Shown: positions 6,146-17,471 of the stretch, in pieces
How the letters are laid out: each line of letters starts with the position of its first letter
Numbering within the stretch: the first letter of the stretch is position 1
Sequence record: LR756500.1
Direction: 5' to 3' (one strand)
Length of the DNA stretch: 41,940 nucleotides
Notes under the pieces: model-generated
Told to the model about the DNA's origin: nothing
Seen by the model: only the letters and a program-made list of their open reading frames with translations
The model's database searches: none
Made by a program: the position numbers and the translations under genes

Positions 6146-9100
6146 TTAGATAAACTCTCCAGTTGAAATAGCACCAGTCTTAAGAACAGTTGTTCTGTGA
6201 ACAAGAATTTCCAATCCCTTTACTGGTTCAACATATGTATCTAGTATACCTATATTTTTGTCTATTACATCAGGAGTATTATTTGTTTCATCCATAATGT
6301 TTCTAAAATCGTATACACCGTTATCTGCTTGAATTTGTCTCATAAAGTTATCAGCAAGTGTTTTAATTTCTAATCTAGTTTGTGCAGTATTAAATTCAAA
6401 AATAAAGTTTTTAAGAATTGCTGCAATACCATCTTGAATATAAATTAATACTTCTCTTACATGAATACTAGAAAGAGCAGACTTGATATTTTGTTGAGCT
6501 GTTTTATTACCAAAGATTACAATACCTGTACCGCTTTGGAAAATAATTGGGTTAAGTCCGAAAGGTTCAATCCAATCTCTATCTTCTTTAGATAAATTAT
6601 ATTCTAATCCAACTAAACCTCTTCCACCTACTACACCTCTTCTAGGACCTGCAACAATTGCCCAAGGTACTGAAGATGTATATTTTTCTACGAAGTTATT
6701 TGACACATAACCAGCAGGAGGAATAGCTAAATTTTTACCTCTATCTCTTACTAATACATAAGGAATATAAAAACCTGCATAATTTGATCCTTGTTCAACA
6801 CCTGGAAGAGTATATACTACTTTAGGATTTTTAGTTAAATCTCCACCTTCAGAAATCATTTTGGTATCAAGTAAACCTTGAGCATCTAAGAATGAAGGAT
6901 CTGTAGATTCTTTAAAATCTTTTATTGCTGGTGCATTAAGAATTGCAAATGCATTTTGTCTAGTTTTAGCTAAGTTACAAAGAACTGCTTTAGAACCTGA
7001 TTCAATACCTAATCCAAATGAATCAACAATATATCTAAAAGTTATATTATCTTTATCTATAAGAGCTTTATATAATTTTGTTCCAGATATAGTATCGTAT
7101 AAGATATTATTTTGTTGTTCCATAGAACCATCTGGTAAATGATAGCTAGTATAAGTAAATCCATTTAATGAAAATAAAGTATAATAATCAACCCAATCTC
7201 CAATTTTGCTATATACTTCAACTGAAGGAACAGCATTTACAGTTTTAAATAAAACTTTACCTACTGTTGTAACTGTTAATGTAGTAGCATTTTGTGAAAT
7301 TCTAACTATTCTAGTTAATCTAGAAGGACCTGTTGTACCACCATCATCGGCTACTATATATTTACCTACTGCTAATTTATTTGCATAATCAGAATGTACT
7401 TCAATAACATTACTTAATGATGTAGCAGTTGCAGGTATAGTTGAATTTAATGCTCCTTTTAAAGTTTGAATTACTAATGTATCTGTTGCAGCAGGAGTAT
7501 CAGTATTATCAAAAAATACTTCAGAGAAATTAAATGTTCCTTGAGTTACAAAACTTGAATCTTCGTATCCTTCAATTTTAGCAACTGGAATTAAATAATT
7601 TGTATCAGTAATAGCTCCACTTAAATATAAACCTCCATATACTATAGAATCAAATGTAGTTATAGTACTATCAATATATAATACTTCTGCAGCTTGTGGA
7701 TCTCCACTACCGTCTGCATCCCATATCATTTTATCTCCATCTGTAATTGTTCCTTGTTCAACGCTAGTATACATATCATTTGAATATGCTGCTATAATTG
7801 AATCAGCAGGTGCTGCAACTAAATCATCAACTAAAAAGTCAATATCTGTATAATTAACATATTTAAGATCATTTCCTGATAGAGCAGTATCAAATGATGT
7901 TTCAGTAATTCCTCCTACTACACTTACTTCAATTAATGCAGTTGTTGCAGTTACCTGTTTAGTAATAACTGGTACAAATTCTCCACTATCTGCTTGTAAA
8001 TAAGAACCTAATATTCTAGGAGATAATTCATTTTCTCTAAATTCTTCTTGTGCAACAATATTATAAAATGTTGCATTAGTTGAACTATCAACACTTATTA
8101 AAAGATTTCCAGATGATGCTAATACTGGATTTAATCCTGTACAATCATTTATAGCTTTTAATGTTACTGATTTCTTAGCATAATCTAAATTAGCTTTAAT
8201 TGTTTCTTTATAAGAAAGAAAATCTATTGTTGTAGGTTGTTCCCATTCTAAATTATGTCCAATTAAATCTAATCCACCATCTACTCCTGAAAGTAATTCA
8301 CCACTATCATATGCTTCTTTATTAATAGAACAAAATAATCCTGTTTTAGAAGTTTCTGTATTAATAATTGTTTCAATGAATAGATTATTACTATTTAAAT
8401 CAATAAAATCTGGAATTAAACATCCTGTATAAGTTGCAATATGATTTACTTCTGGTAAATTTAAGAATGCTTCAAGAGATGTATCAGTCGAATCTGCTAC
8501 TGATACTTTTCTTTTTATACCTCTAGATTTATCAAAATAACTAGCAAATAAAGGATCTGATGCTAATCTTTCATATGGAGTTGTATCAGTTGATTTAGGA
8601 CCAAAATCTCCTTCAATAACTATTACATCAATCATAAAATCTGATATATAATCATCTTTGTGTAAAAACTCAGGTATATTAGATATACCATACCATTCTT
8701 TAACAGTAATATCAAAACCACTTATAAAATCTGCTCTTTTAACAATTACAGTTAAAGGCTTTTTATCGATATTTGTTAAATTAAATAATTTATTTCCAGA
8801 TGAAGTAACATTTTTAATAAATGCTTCTGTATCAGGAAACCAAAATTTATCTCTATTGAAAAATCCTGCAAATAAATCTGATGATTTTGTATCATTAATT
8901 TGTGTTGCACTAGTTGAAAATACAACATCTTCAATTTTATCAGCATTTCCTTCTGAATCGTCATTATTTAATCTTAATAAATTAAGAGCTAAAATTGGAC
9001 CTCTTTCTAAAGCAGCTAAACATGTTCTGTGAAAATAAGAACCTTTTCTTTCTAAAGTTCTATCTATACTTCCATATACATCGCTAAAAAAGCCAGTATC

Positions 9101-9256
9101 TGATACATAAATAGGCGTATTGAAAGGGCCTTTCTTACTAAATCCAACGATCATTCTAATTTGCTCAGCAGGTATAGAAACTGTTTGAGATTTATCAAAC
9201 TCAAATCTATAGGTGCCGGAACTACGAAGCGATGCAATTTGTGGTGATATTGCCAT
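6146..9256 (-). CDS. Tail sheath protein (T4 gp18-like), 1036 aa
   Basis: N-terminal GTYRFEFDKS..IVGFSKKGPFNTP; C-terminal AGPRRG, GNKTAQ..SALSSIHVREVL, FIFEFN..TR, DETNNTPDVID. Confidence 0.95.
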   Translation of the reverse strand: MAISPQIASLRSSGTYRFEFDKSQTVSIPAEQIRMIVGFSKKGPFNTPIYVSDTGFFSDVYGSIDRTLERKGSYFHRTCLAALERGPILALNLLRLNNDDSEGNADKIEDVVFSTSATQINDTKSSDLFAGFFNRDKFWFPDTEAFIKNVTSSGNKLFNLTNIDKKPLTVIVKRADFISGFDITVKEWYGISNIPEFLHKDDYISDFMIDVIVIEGDFGPKSTDTTPYERLASDPLFASYFDKSRGIKRKVSVADSTDTSLEAFLNLPEVNHIATYTGCLIPDFIDLNSNNLFIETIINTETSKTGLFCSINKEAYDSGELLSGVDGGLDLIGHNLEWEQPTTIDFLSYKETIKANLDYAKKSVTLKAINDCTGLNPVLASSGNLLISVDSSTNATFYNIVAQEEFRENELSPRILGSYLQADSGEFVPVITKQVTATTALIEVSVVGGITETSFDTALSGNDLKYVNYTDIDFLVDDLVAAPADSIIAAYSNDMYTSVEQGTITDGDKMIWDADGSGDPQAAEVLYIDSTITTFDSIVYGGLYLSGAITDTNYLIPVAKIEGYEDSSFVTQGTFNFSEVFFDNTDTPAATDTLVIQTLKGALNSTIPATATSLSNVIEVHSDYANKLAVGKYIVADDGGTTGPSRLTRIVRISQNATTLTVTTVGKVLFKTVNAVPSVEVYSKIGDWVDYYTLFSLNGFTYTSYHLPDGSMEQQNNILYDTISGTKLYKALIDKDNITFRYIVDSFGLGIESGSKAVLCNLAKTRQNAFAILNAPAIKDFKESTDPSFLDAQGLLDTKMISEGGDLTKNPKVVYTLPGVEQGSNYAGFYIPYVLVRDRGKNLAIPPAGYVSNNFVEKYTSSVPWAIVAGPRRGVVGGRGLVGLEYNLSKEDRDWIEPFGLNPIIFQSGTGIVIFGNKTAQQNIKSALSSIHVREVLIYIQDGIAAILKNFIFEFNTAQTRLEIKTLADNFMRQIQADNGVYDFRNIMDETNNTPDVIDKNIGILDTYVEPVKGLEILVHRTTVLKTGAISTGEFI

Positions 9257-9280
9257 AATTTTTAATTTTTTTTATTTTTA

Positions 9281-9289
9281 TTATATATC
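9281..9289 (-). promoter_or_regulatory. Late-promoter-like motif GATATATAA (tail sheath)
   Basis: Upstream of sheath ATG. Confidence 0.65.
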
Positions 9290-9330
9290 ATCAACAAACT
9301 TTAAAAATTAAAAATTATAGAAATAATTTA

Positions 9331-11178
9331 TTAATTTGTATTAATGTAATTAAATTTTAAATTACCTGTTCCAAAACATCTATAATATCCTTTATCATGC
9401 ATTATCTCCACTTCAGTCATTGATGGATCCGCTCCTTCTTTAACCAATTTATCCTTTCTGAACTTAAACCTATTTTCTCTTATGCCATCTACTACCCACC
9501 AATAACTAAGCTCTGAATGCCCTATATATTTAAAACCTAATTTTATATACAAATTATCTTGCTCATTTGATGTCCAATCACAATCAGTATAACTAATTAC
9601 TTGTTCTGGTTTGTATTCCTTTGTAAAATAATTAAACAAACGACTTGCACCTCCTGTAACAGATATATTCAATTTATTAGCAAACCTTAAAAGTTCATAT
9701 TCTCCTTCAACTGCCTTTTGTCCTAAATTCTTTCTTAATGATCCTAACGTCATTAATGATACTAATTCATTNNNNNNNNNNNNNNNNNNNNNAACAGCAG
9801 CATTAACATTACCTTGCAAATGGTTCCTATTTAAAAACTCTCGACTATCACTAGAGGACACCTCTTTAATTATACACTTTCTAGCATATATAGTTTCATT
9901 TAAATTTAATAGCCCTTTTATTCTTGACTTAATAATATCTTTTTTATAATTCCAATCATCTTCCCAAATATGCACCAACTTAACTCCTTTAGATTTAGCT
10001 AATAATGTTTTATTTAAATGATATTTATCATCTTTATATAATTCGGAATGCCAATAGACACCATCTACTTCAAATCCTACTTTATAATCTTCTATATAAA
10101 TATCTATTTCATTATCATTTAAAATGGTTCGATCTTTTTTTGTTTCTATATTTAAACTTTCTATAAATTCTCTAATTTCATTTTCTATTTTACTTTCAAA
10201 AGAATTTGAATAATATAAAGGTTCACAATTTAAACATGTATTTTTATTTATTAATGATCTTTTATGAAGTAAATAGCTTGTTATAGTATATTCTTTATTA
10301 CATTTATCGCATGTTATAGTAACATTTAAATTATTATCAATATTAATAATATTTAGAGTATTAAATTTATTTAAAATATCATTTTTATATTTATTTTTTA
10401 ATTTTGATTTATAAAAATTAGATTGAGTTATAAATTCAGTTNNNNNNNNNNNNNNNNNNNNNNCTTTTGATTTTTCTTTTATTTGTTCTGATTGTAATAC
10501 ATGATTAGTACCATATTTTTCTAAGCATGTTAATTCTCTTTTTTCTAAACTTTCTTTTGTTACATTATGAAACTGATTATATCTTTTAAAATTAGTTTCT
10601 TTTATTTTTTGTTTAATTTCATTATTTCTAAATACATTATCACTTCCATATTTTTCAGTTAAAGTTTTTATAGATTTTTGTTTAATTTTTATATTATCAA
10701 AAACATATTCAACTCCATAANNNNNNNNNNNNNNNNNNNNNNNNNNNNNNCTTATCTTTTTAACAGATAATATTTCTTCATTACCATATTTTTCTAAACA
10801 TGTTGATTTTCTTTTTTCTATTGCTAATTTACTTTGACTTGGATTTATTGTTCCATATCTTTCTAATGAAGTTTTTCTAATTTTATTTATAGATAATTGT
10901 TTTGAACATTCATTTGAACATGATGTATAACCAATAGAAATAGATCTAAATTTTTTTAAATTATTTTTACATATTTCACATATAGGTATTTCACATATAT
11001 CATTTAAATATAAATAAAGAATTTCTTTAAATTGTATTTTAGTAAAATTATATTTTGTAATAAAAATATTTAAATCATTTAAAATTTCTGGTTCAAATTT
11101 TTCGAACCATTTTTTATTCATTCTAGTTGATAAAAAACGATTATTTATTTTTATTATATGCAGTAATTTATTTTTCAT
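9331..11178 (-). CDS. Hef-like putative homing endonuclease, copy 4
   Basis: CEICK..CSNEC, multiple KYG repeats, FEVDGVYWH, NHLQG, YELLRFA, ISYTD..LYIKLGF. Confidence 0.85.
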   Translation of the reverse strand: MKNKLLHIIKINNRFLSTRMNKKWFEKFEPEILNDLNIFITKYNFTKIQFKEILYLYLNDICEIPICEICKNNLKKFRSISIGYTSCSNECSKQLSINKIRKTSLERYGTINPSQSKLAIEKRKSTCLEKYGNEEILSVKKIXXXXXXXXXXXYGVEYVFDNIKIKQKSIKTLTEKYGSDNVFRNNEIKQKIKETNFKRYNQFHNVTKESLEKRELTCLEKYGTNHVLQSEQIKEKSKXXXXXXXXTEFITQSNFYKSKLKNKYKNDILNKFNTLNIINIDNNLNVTITCDKCNKEYTITSYLLHKRSLINKNTCLNCEPLYYSNSFESKIENEIREFIESLNIETKKDRTILNDNEIDIYIEDYKVGFEVDGVYWHSELYKDDKYHLNKTLLAKSKGVKLVHIWEDDWNYKKDIIKSRIKGLLNLNETIYARKCIIKEVSSSDSREFLNRNHLQGNVNAAVXXXXXXXNELVSLMTLGSLRKNLGQKAVEGEYELLRFANKLNISVTGGASRLFNYFTKEYKPEQVISYTDCDWTSNEQDNLYIKLGFKYIGHSELSYWWVVDGIRENRFKFRKDKLVKEGADPSMTEVEIMHDKGYYRCFGTGNLKFNYINTN

Positions 11179-11271
11179 TTAAAAATTTTATATTATATGC
11201 ATATTTATCAGTTTGTTTTTAAAATAAAAAAGTCTATATTTCTATAAACTTTTAAATTACTATAACTTTAT

Positions 11272-12084
11272 TTAAATTTTAAAATATTTATCTTTTATTT
11301 TAAATGATAAATTATATTCATGCATAAAGTTTTCTTCACCTATATTTTTTATAGTATCTTCTTTCCATTTTTCATTTCTTTGTGGATGATCATACCAATA
11401 AACTTTTTTAACTTTAAATATTTCAGAATCTTGTACAAATTTATAAAATAAATCAAAATGAATATCTGAAGACATAATAATTATTCTAGAATTATTAATT
11501 GAAGCATATAATGGTACTATTTCTTTTATTAAAATTTTTTTATTATTATCAGACATGTTAGAAATATTATCAATTATAAAAATATCATAAAGTTTACCTT
11601 TATAATTATTACTATTTACTAATTGTATACTTGAATTATTATCGAATTCTATTACTTCTGATGTGCTTTTTATAATACCTGGTTTCAAATACATAGGTAA
11701 TTTAGAATAAAAAATTTTAAATTTATTAAATAATTCTCTACCAATTTCATGTTTAATTGAAAATAAAGCTATTTTTTTTTGTTCAAATACTGCAAAATAT
11801 AAAGATAATAATGTATTTAACATTGAAATTCCCATTTGTCTAGAACTTAATAATATTGAAAATCTATTTTCATTCCAAAATTTTAAAATATCTTTTTGAT
11901 ATTCATATAAATTAATATCCAATTTTGATATAAAATATTCAATATCTTTTCTACATTTATAATATTCATCTAATTCATCATAATCTAAAACATATTTAAA
12001 TTTACTATTTTTACTATTAGGTATATTTCTATAACAATATTCATTGCTATTTATACTATTTTTATTTATATAATTCATAACCAT
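11272..12084 (-). CDS. Terminase large-subunit ATPase-domain paralogue with degenerate motifs
   Basis: YKCRKDIEYF, LYEYQ (Q motif), SRQMGIS (Walker A without Lys), FIIDNIS (Walker B DE>DN), YSKLPMYLKPG, VYWYDHPQR; no nuclease domain. Confidence 0.8.
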   Translation of the reverse strand: MVMNYINKNSINSNEYCYRNIPNSKNSKFKYVLDYDELDEYYKCRKDIEYFISKLDINLYEYQKDILKFWNENRFSILLSSRQMGISMLNTLLSLYFAVFEQKKIALFSIKHEIGRELFNKFKIFYSKLPMYLKPGIIKSTSEVIEFDNNSSIQLVNSNNYKGKLYDIFIIDNISNMSDNNKKILIKEIVPLYASINNSRIIIMSSDIHFDLFYKFVQDSEIFKVKKVYWYDHPQRNEKWKEDTIKNIGEENFMHEYNLSFKIKDKYFKI

Positions 12085-12087
12085 TTT

Positions 12088-12099
12088 TATTTATATATT
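12088..12099 (-). promoter_or_regulatory. AATATATAAATA (contains T4 late consensus TATAAATA), terminase paralogue
   Basis: Directly upstream of ATG 12084. Confidence 0.65.
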
Positions 12100-12154
12100 A
12101 ACAATAGAGTCAGAAAAAATTTAAAAATTAATTTTTTCTGACTCTATTGTTAAT
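12097..12154. terminator. 25-bp perfect inverted repeat, 8-nt loop, after TerL-C
   Basis: ATTAACAATAGAGTCAGAAAAAATT (12097-12121) and its exact complement (12130-12154). Confidence 0.8.
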
Positions 12155-12175
12155 TTTTTTAATAGTTAGTTACTT

Positions 12176-14062
12176 TTAAATAATATCATAAATATCGAAA
12201 AATAAACTACCATCTTCTCCTTTAGATCCCTTATTTAATTCTTTATCAACTAAATCTTGAATATCTTTTTCTATTATTTCATATAATTCTTCTGCAAAAT
12301 CTGAGAAATCCATAGTAGAAAAGAATTCATTACTGGTTATGCAAGACATTATTAAATCATCGTGTCCCTTCATTCCAGCATAGGATCCAGCTGGAGTTTT
12401 TCCAAATTGTTTAGCTTCTTCTATTGTATTAAATTCAAATAATTGTATTCTATTTTCTCTAATTGATTTTTTAAATTTTTGACATATTATAGGTTTATTA
12501 TCAGTTTTAATTCTTAATCCAAAACTAGGAGTCTTTGCGTCATTTCTATGTTTAAATTTTACTATCATTTCTTCATCAAATTCATTTCTAGATGGAAAAA
12601 TAGTTTGTAAATTTTTAATTAATTCACCACCAAAAGTATTCCATTCTATTATTATTTTTATATTTTCTGCATAAAAAATATCAAAAATTAAAGTATATAA
12701 TATTTTAGCATATTGTTCAGGAGAATGTTCATTACTTCTAAATACTCCTATTTGTTTTAAAGCAAAAAAGTCCATAAAAGAGCCAGGCTGTTTTAGATGT
12801 TTAAACATATCTTTATCTAATAATTCTAGTTTAAAGATATTTATTACAGCATGATCTCCAAAATTACCAGCAGATAAATCACAACTAAATAACCAATAAT
12901 TTTCTTCATTACCTATTTCATCAATATCAAATTTTGGATGCCATTTCAAAAATATTTCATAAGGTATTTCTAAATCTTCTAATTCATCAAATTGATGTGA
13001 TATAAATTCTACTTTTGCATTTTCTAATTTTTTAAGTTCTCCTGGACCTAAAAGTAAATTATCTCCTGATATAAATTGATTACCATATTGTCTATTAAAT
13101 GCATCTTCACCACCTAAATTAGAAATTTCTTTTCTCATCCATTCATTATCTCTTCCTGGAACCTCCCACCAATCAACTCTAAAATCTTTAAATTCATTTT
13201 GTTTTCTAACAGCTCCATCATAAATATCATGAAACTTATTAAATCCATTTGGTGTACTAGTAATAATAATTCTAGATATTTGTGAAGACGATAATGTAGG
13301 AAATACATTTTCATAAAAACTATGTACAAAATTAGGATGTATGTGAGCAAACTCATCTAAAAATAAAAGGTGAATAGTAAAACCTATACCTGCTTTTTTA
13401 GTAGTAGATTGAGCAACAATCCTACAGCCATTATCAAATTTTAAATTAAATACATCATTTTTTAATAATCCTGGTTTCATAAAAAATGGTAAATTATCTA
13501 ATATAACTTTTGCTTTATCTACAATTTCTCTCGTCGTGGCACCTTTATTCGATAAAATTAAACAATTCTTATCAAAATTAAATAATACGTACCATGCTAT
13601 ATAAATTGACGAACATATTGTTTGACTTGAAAGTATACCATTAGTATATAATCTATGATTTGGATGATTTACTGTAACATCAAACATACCTATTTTATTG
13701 TTACTTTTTGATATACTAATAATTTTTTCTAAACCATCGACTGTTATTATTTCCGTATTTAATTCAAGTTTATCGAAAGATATTTTATTATAATTTTTAT
13801 CATAAACTTTATGTAAATCAGCGCCTTCTAAAATTTTACCTGACTCTGTTATTATTGTCCATACTTTATAAGGTTGAGTATTATGAAGATATTGTAATTC
13901 TTCATATCCAGTATCAGTTAAAACTTGTATATATGATAACTTAATAGATTTAATTATTTTTTTAGATATATTATTTTCATCTAAATCTAAATTTCTATAC
14001 TGTATTTTTTCTATTAATTCTATTAAGTATAAAATTATTTTTTTTAATATTTTTTTTATCAT
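12176..14062 (-). CDS. terL: Terminase large subunit, C-terminal part, preceded by split-intein IntC (aa 1-147)
   Basis: Intein blocks EGADLH, MFDVTV..HRLYTNGILSSQ|T, then TICSSIYIAW, Walker B LFLDEFAH, STPNG, nuclease motifs CDLSAG..GD and HDDLIM. Confidence 0.92.
   Translation of the reverse strand: MIKKILKKIILYLIELIEKIQYRNLDLDENNISKKIIKSIKLSYIQVLTDTGYEELQYLHNTQPYKVWTIITESGKILEGADLHKVYDKNYNKISFDKLELNTEIITVDGLEKIISISKSNNKIGMFDVTVNHPNHRLYTNGILSSQTICSSIYIAWYVLFNFDKNCLILSNKGATTREIVDKAKVILDNLPFFMKPGLLKNDVFNLKFDNGCRIVAQSTTKKAGIGFTIHLLFLDEFAHIHPNFVHSFYENVFPTLSSSQISRIIITSTPNGFNKFHDIYDGAVRKQNEFKDFRVDWWEVPGRDNEWMRKEISNLGGEDAFNRQYGNQFISGDNLLLGPGELKKLENAKVEFISHQFDELEDLEIPYEIFLKWHPKFDIDEIGNEENYWLFSCDLSAGNFGDHAVINIFKLELLDKDMFKHLKQPGSFMDFFALKQIGVFRSNEHSPEQYAKILYTLIFDIFYAENIKIIIEWNTFGGELIKNLQTIFPSRNEFDEEMIVKFKHRNDAKTPSFGLRIKTDNKPIICQKFKKSIRENRIQLFEFNTIEEAKQFGKTPAGSYAGMKGHDDLIMSCITSNEFFSTMDFSDFAEELYEIIEKDIQDLVDKELNKGSKGEDGSLFFDIYDII
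13622..14062 (-). mobile_element. Split intein C-fragment (147 aa, atypically long, ends Ser-Gln; +1 Thr)
   Basis: Block B-, F- and G-like motifs; junction codons TCA AGT CAA|ACA. Confidence 0.8.
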
Positions 14063-15162
14063 TATTTATTTTTATTTTCTATAAATTCTAAGCAATTATT
14101 TATTACTAAATCAGGATCTTTATAATATTCTAATTCATTTACATGATATACTTCATATCCTGATCTTAATATTGCATCATCTCTATCTTTTTCTCTTTTA
14201 TTATTTTCGGGATTATTTTTATGATAATATACACCATCAAATTCTATAATTTTATTTATATCTTTTATAAAAAAATCTGGTAAAATTATTCTATTACATA
14301 ATCTTAATCTATATTCTGAATTAGTACCATCATCTAAAATAATTTTATTTTTATTTAAAGTTGCAAAATATATCTCATTATATTTATCTTTTATAATTTC
14401 ATATAAAGAAATAAAAAGTTTCTGTGATACTTTAGAATAACTACTTACTTTAAAATTATTACTCCATCTATTTATTTTTAAATTCCATTTTTCTATACCT
14501 ATTTCTTCTCCATATTTATTTATAAAAAAATTTAAATCTCTACACTGAATTTTAGAAATAATATTTTTTGCTTCTTCTAAAGAAAAACCTCTTCGTATCC
14601 AATATTCTTTATGTATAGGCATAACTCTATTTTTCATAAAATACTTATAATTATCTTTTTTCATAATAAAATATTCTTCATCTGTTAAATTAGGATATCT
14701 CTTTTTATAAAACTCAATAGAAAATGGACTAGTCTCTTTACGTTTTTGCTCAGTAGTTTTACTTTTAGACATAATGTTTCCTTCACCTTTCATTCTATCA
14801 GAAATCCATTTTCTCCATTTATCTTCTTTCATATGTTTACCTCCATTTATAGTTGTTGCCGCTTTATCACTAGGTATACATAATAATGCATCTACACCAA
14901 AATCTTTTCTATAATCACTATTATTTTTATCGGGATGAAATCTTTTGAAATGACCACTATATATTCTTTTAACAGCCATTCCACAATATTTACATATAAC
15001 ATAATCTGTATTTTCTATACTGTTTAATTTTAATTTTTCCGATTCTTTATAAGCACCATAAATACCTTTACATTTATTTGAACAAAATTTAGCACTTATA
15101 GTAGAAGAGTTAAATTCATTTTTACAATGAATGCATTTTATTTTTCTAATTATATTTGACAT
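14062..15162 (-). CDS. Free-standing Vsr/DUF559-like endonuclease between the terL halves
   Basis: Zn motifs CIHC..FCSNKC and CKYC..HFKRFH, KYGEE repeat, LPDFF..IIEFDGVYYH; own TATAAATA promoter; TAATG overlap with TerL-C. Confidence 0.85.
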   Translation of the reverse strand: MSNIIRKIKCIHCKNEFNSSTISAKFCSNKCKGIYGAYKESEKLKLNSIENTDYVICKYCGMAVKRIYSGHFKRFHPDKNNSDYRKDFGVDALLCIPSDKAATTINGGKHMKEDKWRKWISDRMKGEGNIMSKSKTTEQKRKETSPFSIEFYKKRYPNLTDEEYFIMKKDNYKYFMKNRVMPIHKEYWIRRGFSLEEAKNIISKIQCRDLNFFINKYGEEIGIEKWNLKINRWSNNFKVSSYSKVSQKLFISLYEIIKDKYNEIYFATLNKNKIILDDGTNSEYRLRLCNRIILPDFFIKDINKIIEFDGVYYHKNNPENNKREKDRDDAILRSGYEVYHVNELEYYKDPDLVINNCLEFIENKNK

Positions 15163-15166
15163 TTTT

Positions 15167-15178
15167 TATTTATATATT
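15167..15178 (-). promoter_or_regulatory. AATATATAAATA, endonuclease/TerL-C
   Basis: Directly upstream of ATG 15162. Confidence 0.7.
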
Positions 15179-15188
15179 AGATATAGTA

Positions 15189-15764
15189 CTAGCTTCTTGA
15201 TAGATAAGAATATGTTTTATATAAATAATATTTAATTTTATCTAAAAAAGATAATGTTTTATTTGTTTTAGATATAACATAATATAATTCAAATATAGGA
15301 AGTGTATAAGTATTATCTTTATTTTTAAATTTACTTAAACTATTAATTAAAGTAATATCATTTAACTTTATAGTAATTAATATATTATGGAAAAAACATT
15401 TCCCCGTTTGTCTCGCCGCGAGGCAGATACTGAAGCGATTATCAACAAAATGTCTAAGCATTTTTTCTTGATAATCTCTTAATACAATTGTTCTAAGACC
15501 TTCATCGGTCATTACTGTACAATACTTATTAGCAAAATATACTATATCTTTAGCACATTTTCTTATTTCACTTATTTCAAAATCTGTATAATCAAATATT
15601 ATGTTACCTTTTCTTATTGTTGGATTGCCTTCATAAAAGGGAGTTGATTTGGGTTTATAACCTTCATCAATCATATTCATTAATTCATTGATTTTTTCGG
15701 TACTCCATGCTGTTCTTTCTTGCACATTATCTTCTTTATGTGCTAGCGCGTATTCTTCTTCCAT
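15189..15764 (-). CDS. terL: Terminase large subunit, N-terminal part (aa 1-122) + split-intein IntN (aa 123-191)
   Basis: KCAKDIVYFANKYC, LRDYQ, Walker A AARQTGK directly followed by Cys1 (CFFHNILI..LPIFELY). Confidence 0.92.
   Translation of the reverse strand: MEEEYALAHKEDNVQERTAWSTEKINELMNMIDEGYKPKSTPFYEGNPTIRKGNIIFDYTDFEISEIRKCAKDIVYFANKYCTVMTDEGLRTIVLRDYQEKMLRHFVDNRFSICLAARQTGKCFFHNILITIKLNDITLINSLSKFKNKDNTYTLPIFELYYVISKTNKTLSFLDKIKYYLYKTYSYLSRS
15192..15398 (-). mobile_element. Split intein N-fragment of terL (69 aa)
   Basis: Cys after GK; block A-like; no block B, which is in the other half. Confidence 0.75.
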
Positions 15765-15774
15765 ATTTTAATTA

Positions 15775-16686
15775 TTAATCGAAAAAACCGAATTCAGTGG
15801 CATTTTCTATGTGTTCATATTTAACTCGTAAATCTTTAGGTAATAATTTAACTAAATGATTTAAATCATTTAAATTATTATCAAATATTTTTACAAAATT
15901 TGTTTTTATTTTTTTAAACATTATATCTAATATTTTAATTAAATATTGTTTATCCATTTTAATTTCTTTAACAACTATATTAAAAGTTTTTAATATTTCT
16001 AATAAATATTCTAAATTAGTTTCACTATAATCTAAATATTTATTGTTAAATATATTATATAATCTTACATCATTTTCATTATTATCACCTGTTTCTATAC
16101 TATTATATTTTGATATCATTTTCAATACTAAATTAATATCATTTATAGTAACATATTTATGTAAAAAATCACTATGTATAAAATTGTTTATCTTTTTTTC
16201 TATGTTATCATATTCCTTTTTTGCATTAGCTTTTAGATCGCTACTTGTTTCTAAATGATTTTGTAAAAAGAAAGTACTTTCATAATATTGAGTAGTTACT
16301 AAAAAAAATTTATCATTTCTATTTAAAACTTCTATTTCTGGTCCAGGCACAAATTCACTATTCATAGAAGGATGTTCTTCTTGATAATAATGTTTTCTAC
16401 TTATTCCTATTTCTGGAAAATCTTTAGCCATCAATAAAAAACAAGGTTGGTTTAAAACAGGTAGTTTGATATCACCTATTTCTAAATTATGTGGAGTATT
16501 TGATCTATTAGAAATTAATAATCTAGTAACTTCTTTTATAACATTTCCACTTTTTTCTCTAAGTAACCATGCAACAAGTCCGTCTTTATCATAAATTTCT
16601 TTAAAATATTTTTTACTAATATTATGATTAATTGAATCATGAACAGATTCAATTAAAAAATCTTTATATGTTTGAATATATTTCAT
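15775..16686 (-). CDS. Hypothetical protein with CTS-like leader [14 protein letters not shown]
   Basis: 303-aa ORF, no recognisable domain; ends KYEHIENATEFGFFD. Confidence 0.75.
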   Translation of the reverse strand: MKYIQTYKDFLIESVHDSINHNISKKYFKEIYDKDGLVAWLLREKSGNVIKEVTRLLISNRSNTPHNLEIGDIKLPVLNQPCFLLMAKDFPEIGISRKHYYQEEHPSMNSEFVPGPEIEVLNRNDKFFLVTTQYYESTFFLQNHLETSSDLKANAKKEYDNIEKKINNFIHSDFLHKYVTINDINLVLKMISKYNSIETGDNNENDVRLYNIFNNKYLDYSETNLEYLLEILKTFNIVVKEIKMDKQYLIKILDIMFKKIKTNFVKIFDNNLNDLNHLVKLLPKDLRVKYEHIENATEFGFFD

Positions 16687-16697: not shown

Positions 16698-17471
16698 TTA
16701 ATTATCGAAANNNNNNNNNNNNNNNNNNNNNNNNNNNNNNNNNNNNNNNNNNNNNNNNNNNNNNNNNNNNNNNNNNNNNNNNNNNNNNNNNNNNNNNNNN
16801 NNNNNNNNNNNNNNNNNNNNNNNNNNNNNNNNNNNNNNNNNNNNNNNNNNNNNNNNNNNNNNNNNNNNNNNNNNNNNNNNNNNNNNNNNNNNNNNNNNNN
16901 NNNNNNNNNNNNNNNNNNNNNNNNNNNNNNNNNNATTCTTTAAATTGCCAATCTCCTTTGGCAACTCAGTTAATTTATTATTATCTAAATTTAAATATGT
17001 TAATTTAGTTAAATTACCAATCTCCTTTGGCAACTCAGTTAACTGATTATTATATAAATTTAAAATTTTTAAATTCATTAAATTACCAATCTCCTTTGGT
17101 AACTCAACCAACTGATTTCTATTTAAATTTAATTCTTCTAAATTCTTTAAATTTCCTATTTCCTTTGGAAATTCCTTCAACTTATTATCACGTAAATTTA
17201 ATTCTGTTAATNNNNNNNNNNNNNNNNNNNNNNNNNNNNNNNNNNNNNNNNNNNNNNNNNNNNNNNNNNNNNNNNNNNNNNNNNNNNNNNNNNNNNNNNN
17301 NNNNNNNNNNNNNNNNNNNNTATTTAACTTATTATTATTTAAAGTTAAAGCTGTTAAGTTAACTAATTTTTCAATTGAAACTTTAGCTAAATTAGCTATT
17401 AACTCTAATGTATCTAATTTAACTTCTTTAGCTTCTAATAAAAAATCTTTATATGTTTGAATATATTTCAT
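16698..17471 (-). CDS. Leucine-rich-repeat protein with CTS-like leader [14 protein letters not shown]
   Basis: 23-aa repeats [23 protein letters not shown], visible as ~69-nt DNA repeats; N-runs 16711-16934 and 17212-17320. Confidence 0.9.

Follow-up and report, generated by a model that had tools for sequence, protein, structure and literature searches.

A fractured phage terminase gene carrying an atypically split intein with a Ser-Gln terminus

The window analyzed here, 41,940 nt long, is 100% identical to the corresponding part of LR756500.1, an unannotated "uncultured phage" record of 462,018 bp that represents a 462-kb groundwater phage. Its gene for the large terminase subunit (terL) is divided between two open reading frames (ORFs), TerL-N and TerL-C, with a third ORF lying between them. 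We are highly confident that this is a fractured T4-type terL, in which an atypically split class 1 intein occupies the P-loop and is accompanied by the gene of a putative Vsr-like homing endonuclease. The overall architecture, the atypical position of the split and the Thr at position +1 are known or are the norm in this intein family, and only the Ser-Gln end of the intein is new. On balance we favor the reading that a mobile intein-endonuclease cassette fractured terL, and that this Ser-Gln copy splices in trans through cyclization of Gln147, probably at a reduced rate.

The Two Outer ORFs Are Halves of One Terminase Gene

Both outer ORFs were identified as terminase large subunits with PHROG and Pfam, PHROG terminase families being matched down to E 4e-30. 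The N-extein matched phrog_5989 (terminase large subunit, E 1.2e-24) and aligned to the N-terminus of intein-free TerLs. The C-extein scored 44.4 bits (E 2e-11) with the Pfam family Terminase_6N (PF03237), above the cut-off of 22 bits, and its full length aligned at 62–69% identity with over 100 TerLs, most of them of 603–609 residues and some intein-bearing. The Walker A (RQTGK/T) and Walker B (LLFLDEF) motifs, the nuclease domain and the length of about 600 residues are those of a T4-type large terminase (Terminase_6).

The insertion point is located between the Lys and the Thr of the Walker A P-loop. TerL-N reads ..AARQTGK(122) followed by C(123)FFHN, and the C-terminal intein segment (IntC) ends in NGILSSQ, followed by TICSS. 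When the two exteins were joined in silico (122 + 481 = 603 residues), the product aligned with intein-free TerLs of 606–609 residues over 592–603 positions, with 63.5–69% identity and 1–4 gaps, and close intein-free homologues run RQTGKTICSSIFIAWY uninterrupted through the junction. This colinearity bears out the initial annotation of the locus, which had proposed that splicing would restore GK/T and a 603-residue terminase. The two halves are separate ORFs on the same strand, each carrying one half of a split intein at the extein boundary, which is the arrangement of a fractured gene. The ORFs of TerL-N, the endonuclease and TerL-C are all intact, with no frameshift and no internal stop. The coordinates are collected in Table 1.

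Table 1. Features of the fractured terL locus (positions in the window).
Feature	Position	Strand	Remarks
TerL-N (P0001)	15189-15764	-	191 aa; ORF and translation
N-extein of TerL (P0001 1-122)	15399-15764	-	ends AARQTGK, first half of the Walker A P-loop
Leu103 codon	15456-15458	-	CTT in the window; TTA (synonymous) in the majority contig of the sample
Cys123 codon	15396-15398	-	TGT; intein residue 1, block A nucleophile
IntN, N-terminal intein segment (P0001 123-191)	15189-15398	-	69 aa plus TAG stop
Putative homing endonuclease gene (P0003)	14062-15162	-	366 aa; free-standing, between the TerL halves
TerL-C (P0002)	12176-14062	-	628 aa
IntC, C-terminal intein segment (P0002 1-147)	13622-14062	-	147 aa
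Ser146-Gln147 codons	13622-13627	-	AGT CAA; non-canonical intein end (family: His-Asn)
Thr148 codon	13619-13621	-	ACA; +1 nucleophile and P-loop Thr
C-extein of TerL	12176-13621	-	481 aa plus stop; remainder of the ATPase domain (with Walker B LLFLDEF) plus nuclease domain

The initial annotation had counted a second intact terL elsewhere in the genome, along with a missing spliced product, against its reading; a search of the whole 462-kb record turned up no other complete terL. Two other ORFs with terminase similarity were noted. One of them, of 270 residues (11272–12084, minus strand), lies directly downstream of terL and corresponds, as a paralogue, to no more than the ATPase domain of TerL (phrog_5989, E 2.9e-29; 27% identical to the TerL of the window). 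Its Walker A motif lacks the Lys (SSRQMGIS), Asn replaces the catalytic Glu in its Walker B motif (FIIDN), and the ORF does not occur in the interval from TerL to the tail sheath gene in related loci. This paralogue could be either a pseudo-ATPase or a relic brought in with the neighboring endonuclease. Its candidacy as a substitute terminase was rejected because it consists of the ATPase domain only (RQMGIS, IIDN) and the record holds no second nuclease domain. The other is a stray ORF of 47 residues (MTEFEKCKSNIVYFIEKYCLV..KLRKYQKTYL) at LR756500.1 396569–396742 (L015 1501–1674, minus strand), with stops on both sides and about 200 kb from the real terL. It resembles TerL residues ~60–105 (phrog_5989, E 2.7e-10) and looks like a stray N-terminal fragment of terL.

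Intein Motifs and the P-Loop Family

Nearly every position expected of a class 1 intein was found in the two halves. Cys123 stands immediately after RQTGK and is invariant in 49 IntN relatives. The IntC sequence includes GADLH and MFDVTVNHPNHRLY; block B supplies the invariant His84 within GADLH (IntC 80–84), and the Thr position of the TxxH motif is occupied by Ala throughout the family (A81, invariant). Asp128 and His136 of block F (MFD..NHR) are both invariant columns, and the +1 residue, Thr or Ser in all of the P-loop relatives, is Thr148. Among these positions, only the end of block G departs from the family: the penultimate position (G:6), His in 99% of the relatives, is Ser146 (AGT), and position G:7, Asn in 100% of them, is Gln147 (CAA). 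The translation agrees with the IntC of 147 residues, containing GADLH and ending NGILSSQ before Thr, that had been annotated at first. The Cys-led IntN after RQTGK was also correct, except that its 69 residues include the Cys and do not follow it.

IntC matched its relatives at E 7.6e-53, well outside what chance would give. The search with the IntC region yielded 82 relatives with 30–59% identity, mostly TerL-C proteins that begin at the same point and share the wording M.K.LK.II..LI..IEKIEYRNLDLDE.DISKKI. A minority of the relatives are contiguous, that is, TerLs of about 800–850 residues with an intein of 188–210 residues after RQxGK. An exhaustive search of 1.84 billion representatives gave 637 matches at E 0.001 or better. 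P-loop TerL inteins are a large, widespread metagenomic family of mini-inteins with about 190–210 residues, mostly split at this atypical site.

Against the inteins in the PDB, a profile of the family gave E values from 4.4e-13 to 8e-4, the best being VidaL (4.4e-13), gp41-1 (2.1e-11) and the AceL/GOS-TerL consensus CatC (9.5e-9), with DnaX and NrdJ-1 also matched. The window sequence by itself matched VidaL at E 0.004, and a profile of IntN found nothing meaningful in the PDB. The Pfam intein models gave nothing reaching E 1 on the proteins of this copy, and PF14890 is recorded on several relatives. Since the Pfam models miss this copy, its intein nature was established through the relatives and the profile.

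Two further observations were made within the family. In P0073 (contiguous) and P0070 (split), Thr instead of Cys follows RQAGK (GK/TQLIDSQ...SHN/SVTT), which suggests that this sub-branch has either a Thr1 intein or a shifted junction. In addition, some related TerLs carry further inteins at other sites.

The Atypical Split and the Predicted Docking of the Halves

IntC 30–147 was aligned with CatC 3–112, and IntC 31–147 with VidaL 25–142. The presence of block B in IntC, together with the CatC alignment, places the break after block A, which is where known atypically split inteins are broken. IntN consists of the block A beta-hairpin and a C-terminal amphipathic helix LSFLDKIKYYLYKTYSYL, and IntC of a helix (residues 1–29) followed by the HINT core with blocks B, F, and G. 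CatC has nothing that corresponds to the IntN tail or to residues 1–29 of IntC, and in the contiguous relatives these two helical segments are directly in tandem. IntN is not one of the very short kind (25–37 residues) found in AceL-TerL and GOS-TerL; it reaches 69 residues because of the extra helical tail, which pairs with the helical head of 29 residues in IntC. The endonuclease gene usually sits in the loop of this helical hairpin after block A, splitting the intein atypically.

Prediction of the complex of IntC with IntN gave an ipSAE of 0.82 in three runs, compared with 0.02 for the best of three controls, a score that may reflect likeness to solved split inteins and that is silent on catalysis and binding. 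Among solved complexes, 58 of 80 came up to this mark, and among mismatched pairs, 2 of 110. The partner pLDDT was at least 80, and at least 75% of the contacts were common to the runs. In the models, a helix pair is formed by IntC 3–21 with P0001 170–189 and a strand pair by IntC 45–48 with P0001 130–133, and S145, S146, and T148 are predicted to lie against the N-terminal junction. The prediction supports the docking of the halves into a HINT fold with a helical zipper.

The same layout could in principle be explained at the RNA level, with the endonuclease inside a self-splicing intron whose removal rejoins IntN and IntC into a cis-splicing mini-intein like the relatives of 188–210 residues. 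The existence of contiguous relatives in which the two helices are directly consecutive would fit such an arrangement, as would the group I introns that huge phages often have in terL (PMC12880540). However, no Rfam family, intron or other RNA, was detected in 9000–16500 on either strand at E up to 1, and this reading was rejected on that result. Furthermore, the non-coding sequence amounts to just 26 nt between TerL-N and the endonuclease and 0 nt between the endonuclease and TerL-C, and dozens of split relatives begin IntC with a conserved Met (M.K.LK..) at the same point. The halves of P0004, which overlap by 8 nt with no insert, also speak against it, and we consider an intron highly improbable.

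The P0004 locus (L016 5412–7878) is a particular case among the split relatives. Its TerL-N and TerL-C overlap by 8 nt (AATGATTAA), there is no endonuclease between them, and the intein ends in Ser-Asn. This split was either left after the loss of an endonuclease or made by a frame break alone.

The Middle ORF

The ORF between the two halves, P0003, has Cys-rich motifs in its N-terminal part and a Vsr/DUF559-like nuclease motif (PDF..EFDG..YH..DRD) in its C-terminal part. The Pfam matches to MTES_1575 (E 2.5e-5, 24.7 bits) and DUF559 (E 0.0026, 18.1 bits) were under their cut-offs of 38.2 and 20.6 bits, respectively, and no solved structure was matched in the PDB at E up to 1. Two other fractured terL loci have ORFs in this slot that share 43% and 35% identity with P0003, and the nuclease motif is conserved in the L019 homologue. 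A third fractured terL locus has an ORF of 329 residues in the same slot. From its motifs and its position, the middle ORF is considered a putative Vsr-like homing endonuclease.

Uniqueness and Origin of the Ser-Gln Terminus

The junctions of all the family proteins fetched were compared, and 229 of the 231 end in His-Asn; the other two are the Ser-Asn of P0004 and the Ser-Gln of the window. In an alignment of 80 relatives, every one has Asn at position 147 and 79 have His at position 146, and among representatives at 50% identity every P-loop intein ends in SHN/T or SHN/S. Gln ends do occur elsewhere in related TerLs: P0132, P0163, and P0223 carry a downstream intein that ends GHQ/T, with a Gln end and Thr at +1, in which the penultimate His is kept. 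A full-text literature search for a naturally split intein with a Gln end found none, which is weak evidence of absence. The combination of features that the initial annotation had called unusual is thus reduced to the Ser-Gln end, given that the split site, Thr+1 and the architecture are the family norm and were described in 2009 and 2014.

In the maximum-likelihood tree, P0007, which ends in SHN, is the sister of the window (support 97/81), and P0004 was not firmly placed. The junction codons are TCA CAT AAT ACA in P0007 and TCA AGT CAA, then ACA, in the window, and the Ser codon of P0004 is TCG where the window has AGT. A change from His-Asn to Ser-Gln needs at least four base substitutions in two adjacent codons. 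This confirms that the terminus is not a single-base error, as does a metagenomic contig that reproduces 13586–15447 exactly (see below). Because the sister P0007 has His-Asn and the Ser codons differ, the Ser-Gln end arose on the terminal branch of the window, independently of P0004. The idea that the Ser146 common to P0004 is a sign of long persistence was rejected for the same reasons, P0007 having His-Asn and AGT and TCG belonging to different codon families.

The window deviates from 29 invariant or near-invariant IntC columns only at F87Y, H146S, and N147Q. By our own arithmetic, the probability that at least four of five non-synonymous steps, placed at random on 29 conserved codons, fall in one given pair is about 1e-4. 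In the sequence, this pattern looks like a focused replacement under continued constraint and not like general decay.

The terminus could also belong to a selfish cassette that is impaired in splicing or dead, and that is kept by endonuclease drive together with terminase supplied by co-infecting intein-free genomes. We hold this to be possible, although clearly less probable than splicing. It would account for a simultaneous change of both residues of C-terminal cleavage, the sole case in ~231 junctions and confined to a terminal branch; according to codon logic, moreover, the single-step paths from Asn to Gln run through His or Lys, neither of which is able to cyclize. On the other hand, nearly all of the other conserved intein positions and the three ORFs are intact, the end residue is not a random one but Gln, one of the few workable substitutes, and published precedents show that a Gln end and a missing penultimate His are compatible with splicing.

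Intein-Bearing and Intein-Less Alleles in the Same Sample

The public runs that contain the locus are groundwater metagenomes of one study only. Logan contigs of run X1, which is the probable source sample and so not independent, were compared with the locus. The contigs of the C-extein (12176–13615) and the N-extein (15418–15764) had depths of 53 and 60, respectively. The cassette was recovered as a contig of 1862 nt that spans exactly 13586–15447, with 0 differences, including AGT CAA, and a depth of 8.5. An additional 85-nt contig with a depth of 20.9 joins 13621 to 15399 and omits 1777 nt, exactly those from the Cys123 codon through the Gln147 codon. Beside the intein-bearing terL, the sample therefore contains a version of the gene that lacks the intein exactly and is the more abundant of the two, and the cassette is a minority and probably mobile allele. 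As the depths of 8.5 and 20.9 together fall short of the depth of the flanks, further haplotypes probably exist.

The 85-nt contig shows 5 differences from the window, and since 15418–15447 is overlap common to the contigs, all of them must fall in the 19 nt 15399–15417 beside the junction. Two further bases, 15456 and 15458 in the Leu103 codon, distinguish the window from the majority N-extein contig. This cluster of single-nucleotide polymorphisms (SNPs) directly 5' of the insertion site separates the intein-bearing and intein-less alleles, and may be the result of homing with co-conversion or of the selection of a cleavage-resistant target. A longer intein-less contig was searched for in metagenome_contigs and viral_contigs, using a pattern of both flanks with 19 free bases, and none was found; the protein collection likewise held no 100%-identical intein-free TerL, the best being 69% identical. 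In a second sample, X3, the phage was present at ~3x only, too thin for any statement on the cassette.

The depth values bear on two alternatives. A chimera of assembly or strains, in which the cassette of a rarer related phage was threaded into an abundant intein-free consensus (in the extreme case with consensus errors as the Ser-Gln codons), so that no single real molecule would correspond to the record at this locus, would explain the six- to seven-fold gap in depth between cassette and flanks and the presence of the minority variant at 15456/15458 in the window. It would also fit the IMG/VR version of the genome, G001 (429,198 bp), which breaks here: its position 1 is window 15460, inside TerL-N and 2 nt from the polymorphic Leu103 codon, so that most of the locus is missing from it. 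Evidently the G001 assembly broke at the bubble made by presence and absence of the intein, which fits a branching assembly graph. Nevertheless, the cassette contig has exact 30-nt overlaps with both flank contigs and no difference over 1862 nt, the exact TerL-N protein is also found on a second contig of 50–200 kb, and four base changes in two codons exceed a sequencing slip. Even with mixed strains, the cassette would still be housed in a terL with nearly identical junctions. We therefore judge a chimera to be very unlikely.

The other is the selfish cassette considered above, which gains from the low depth of the intein-bearing contig (8.5, against 53–60 for the exteins) and from the precise intein-less junction at 20.9 in the same sample. 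Yet it needs frequent co-infection, which is doubtful in groundwater. A more elaborate form, to which we give a little less weight still, is that of a natural gene-drive "cheater", possibly en route to rescue, whose Gln would be a partial reversion from a dead intermediate with His or Lys. Given an intein-less allele in the same sample, the assembled genome alone is no proof that the intein splices. The initial claim that DNA packaging depends on trans-splicing holds for this genome, as far as the 462-kb record contains no second complete terL; in the sample, however, the intein-less allele is the deeper one.

Gene Neighborhood and Base Composition

The minus strand carries most of the long ORFs of the window, including every gene of the terL locus. 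The G+C content is ~25% for the window, 14% for IntN, 20% for IntC and 21.6% for the endonuclease, compared with 32% for the N-extein and 25% for the C-extein; the cassette (13622–15398) is more AT-rich than the gene that it interrupts. An alternative genetic code was considered and rejected, given the dense tiling of ORFs under code 11 and the full-length alignment of the C-extein without stops. The 30 ORFs end in 28 TAA and 2 TAG codons, and reading the TAG of IntN as sense would add just 4 residues.

Promoter-like sites showed no excess over shuffled sequence. The only terminator-like site found in 11900–16000 is a hairpin with a perfect 20-bp stem at 12102–12149, inside the 91-nt gap between the TerL-C stop and the 270-residue ORF. 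In the stretch from the terL paralogue to the tail sheath gene (6146–9256) there is a second, large free-standing homing endonuclease of 615 residues (9331–11178, minus strand). It matched phrog_3339 at E 2.4e-112, has DUF7487 and a Vsr/MTES_1575-like core, and is partly masked as N. Upstream of TerL-N, two adjoining ORFs (15775–16686 and 16698–17471, minus strand) have a common N-terminus, and the second contains leucine-rich repeats as well as long stretches that are masked. The place upstream of TerL-N is taken by a Cpn10-like gene in related loci.

Proposed Mechanism and Its Standing

According to the reading that we favor, one late transcript would yield TerL-N, the endonuclease and TerL-C, the last probably by translational coupling, as its ATG overlaps the endonuclease stop (TAATG). 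IntN and IntC would dock by strand pairing and an antiparallel helix pair, rebuilding the HINT fold. Cys123 would then form the thioester and Thr148 would take over the N-extein. In the third step, Gln147 would cyclize to a glutarimide instead of the usual Asn, and His136, retained in block F, may assist in place of the lost penultimate His. A final O-N shift would restore RQTGK-TICSS and the 603-residue TerL. The endonuclease, for its part, would copy the cassette into intein-free terL alleles during co-infection, and such homing would explain the polymorphism of presence and absence. The Ser-Gln end would be a derived, lineage-specific variant, most likely still splicing and probably slower. 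Splicing is favored on account of the focused change, the near-complete intactness of everything else, the choice of Gln among the few workable substitutes and the published precedents.

Several points weigh against this reading. The allele is in the minority within its sample, and the co-occurring intein-free terL could supply terminase in trans, which takes force from the argument that a genome that was assembled has to be viable. The Ser-Gln end is unique and sits on a terminal branch, with no evidence of persistence, and the two positions that are catalytic in step 3 changed together. The silence of the Pfam intein models and the limits of the docking score, both mentioned above, are of the same sign, and no RNA runs containing the locus were found.

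Should the Ser-Gln copy splice, it would be an example of a naturally split intein in which Gln cyclization completes trans-splicing with no penultimate His. With ~230 relatives as a natural His-Asn control, one of them a sister set apart at exactly these codons, it would be a system for studying the re-tuning of step 3. It may also yield an atypical split intein that is slow or cold-adapted and has helical docking arms built in. Should it fail to splice, the locus shows how a deleterious intein can persist. Through the polymorphism of presence and absence, with its adjoining SNP cluster, the dynamics of intein homing can be viewed directly in an uncultivated huge phage. In both cases, the architecture as such was already established.

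Comparison With Known Systems

Fractured genes and the family of Vsr-like endonucleases to which P0003 probably belongs were described by Dassa et al. (2009; PMC2677866). The fractured terminase locus GOS-TerL (GOS, Lake Gatun) of that work is similar in having a gp17-like terminase in two ORFs with a free-standing endonuclease gene between them, and an unusual split point, the long C-part containing all of the N-terminal motifs except N1. By contrast, Ser1/Cys+1, an IntN of 37 residues and an IntC of 115–122 residues are reported for GOS-TerL, whereas the window has Cys1/Thr+1 at GK/T, segments of 69 and 147 residues and a Ser-Gln end. The greater length of both segments is due to the helix added on each side of the break. 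AceL-TerL and the consensus Cat-TerL (PDB 6DSL) share the small IntN with block A and the large IntC with blocks B, F, and G. AceL-TerL differs in its IntN of 25 residues, its IntC of 104, Cys+1 and the lack of helical extensions, and other solved inteins are closer.

With the family profile, VidaL (PDB 6VGV) and gp41-1 (PDB 6QAZ) scored best among solved inteins, and they have wording such as HPNHRYY..GI.SH of blocks F and G in common with the family. The match was made by sequence profile only, and no host protein is given in the PDB entries. VidaL resides in UvsX and gp41-1 in a gp41 helicase.

As for the terminus, Gln-ending inteins have been found to splice with Gln cyclizing in step 3, slowly in the PolII inteins of Pyrococcus abyssi (Pab) and Methanoculleus marisnigri and efficiently in the ribonucleotide reductase (RNR) intein of Chilo iridescent virus (CIV) (PMC4031507, PMC8175363). 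In Pab PolII, the reversion of Gln to Asn sped up C-terminal cleavage 20-fold (PMC4031507). The PolII inteins differ from that of the window in being contiguous and in having a penultimate His in block G, which is named as a catalyst there (PMC8175363). About 5% of active inteins lack the penultimate His (PMC4031507), and the block F His can replace it in its role (PMC4031507, PMC5050341). In phage inteins, the penultimate His is often Gly, Lys, or Ser, and these inteins splice all the same (PMC5050341). Among them, the mycobacteriophage intein TerL1-a (Kelley et al., 2016; PMC5050341) has the same "classic" site, with the invariant P-loop Lys before it and the nucleophilic Thr after it. Its hosts are terminases of the Terminase_1 type and it is not described as split, whereas the intein of the window resides in a Terminase_6 protein, is split and ends in Gln.

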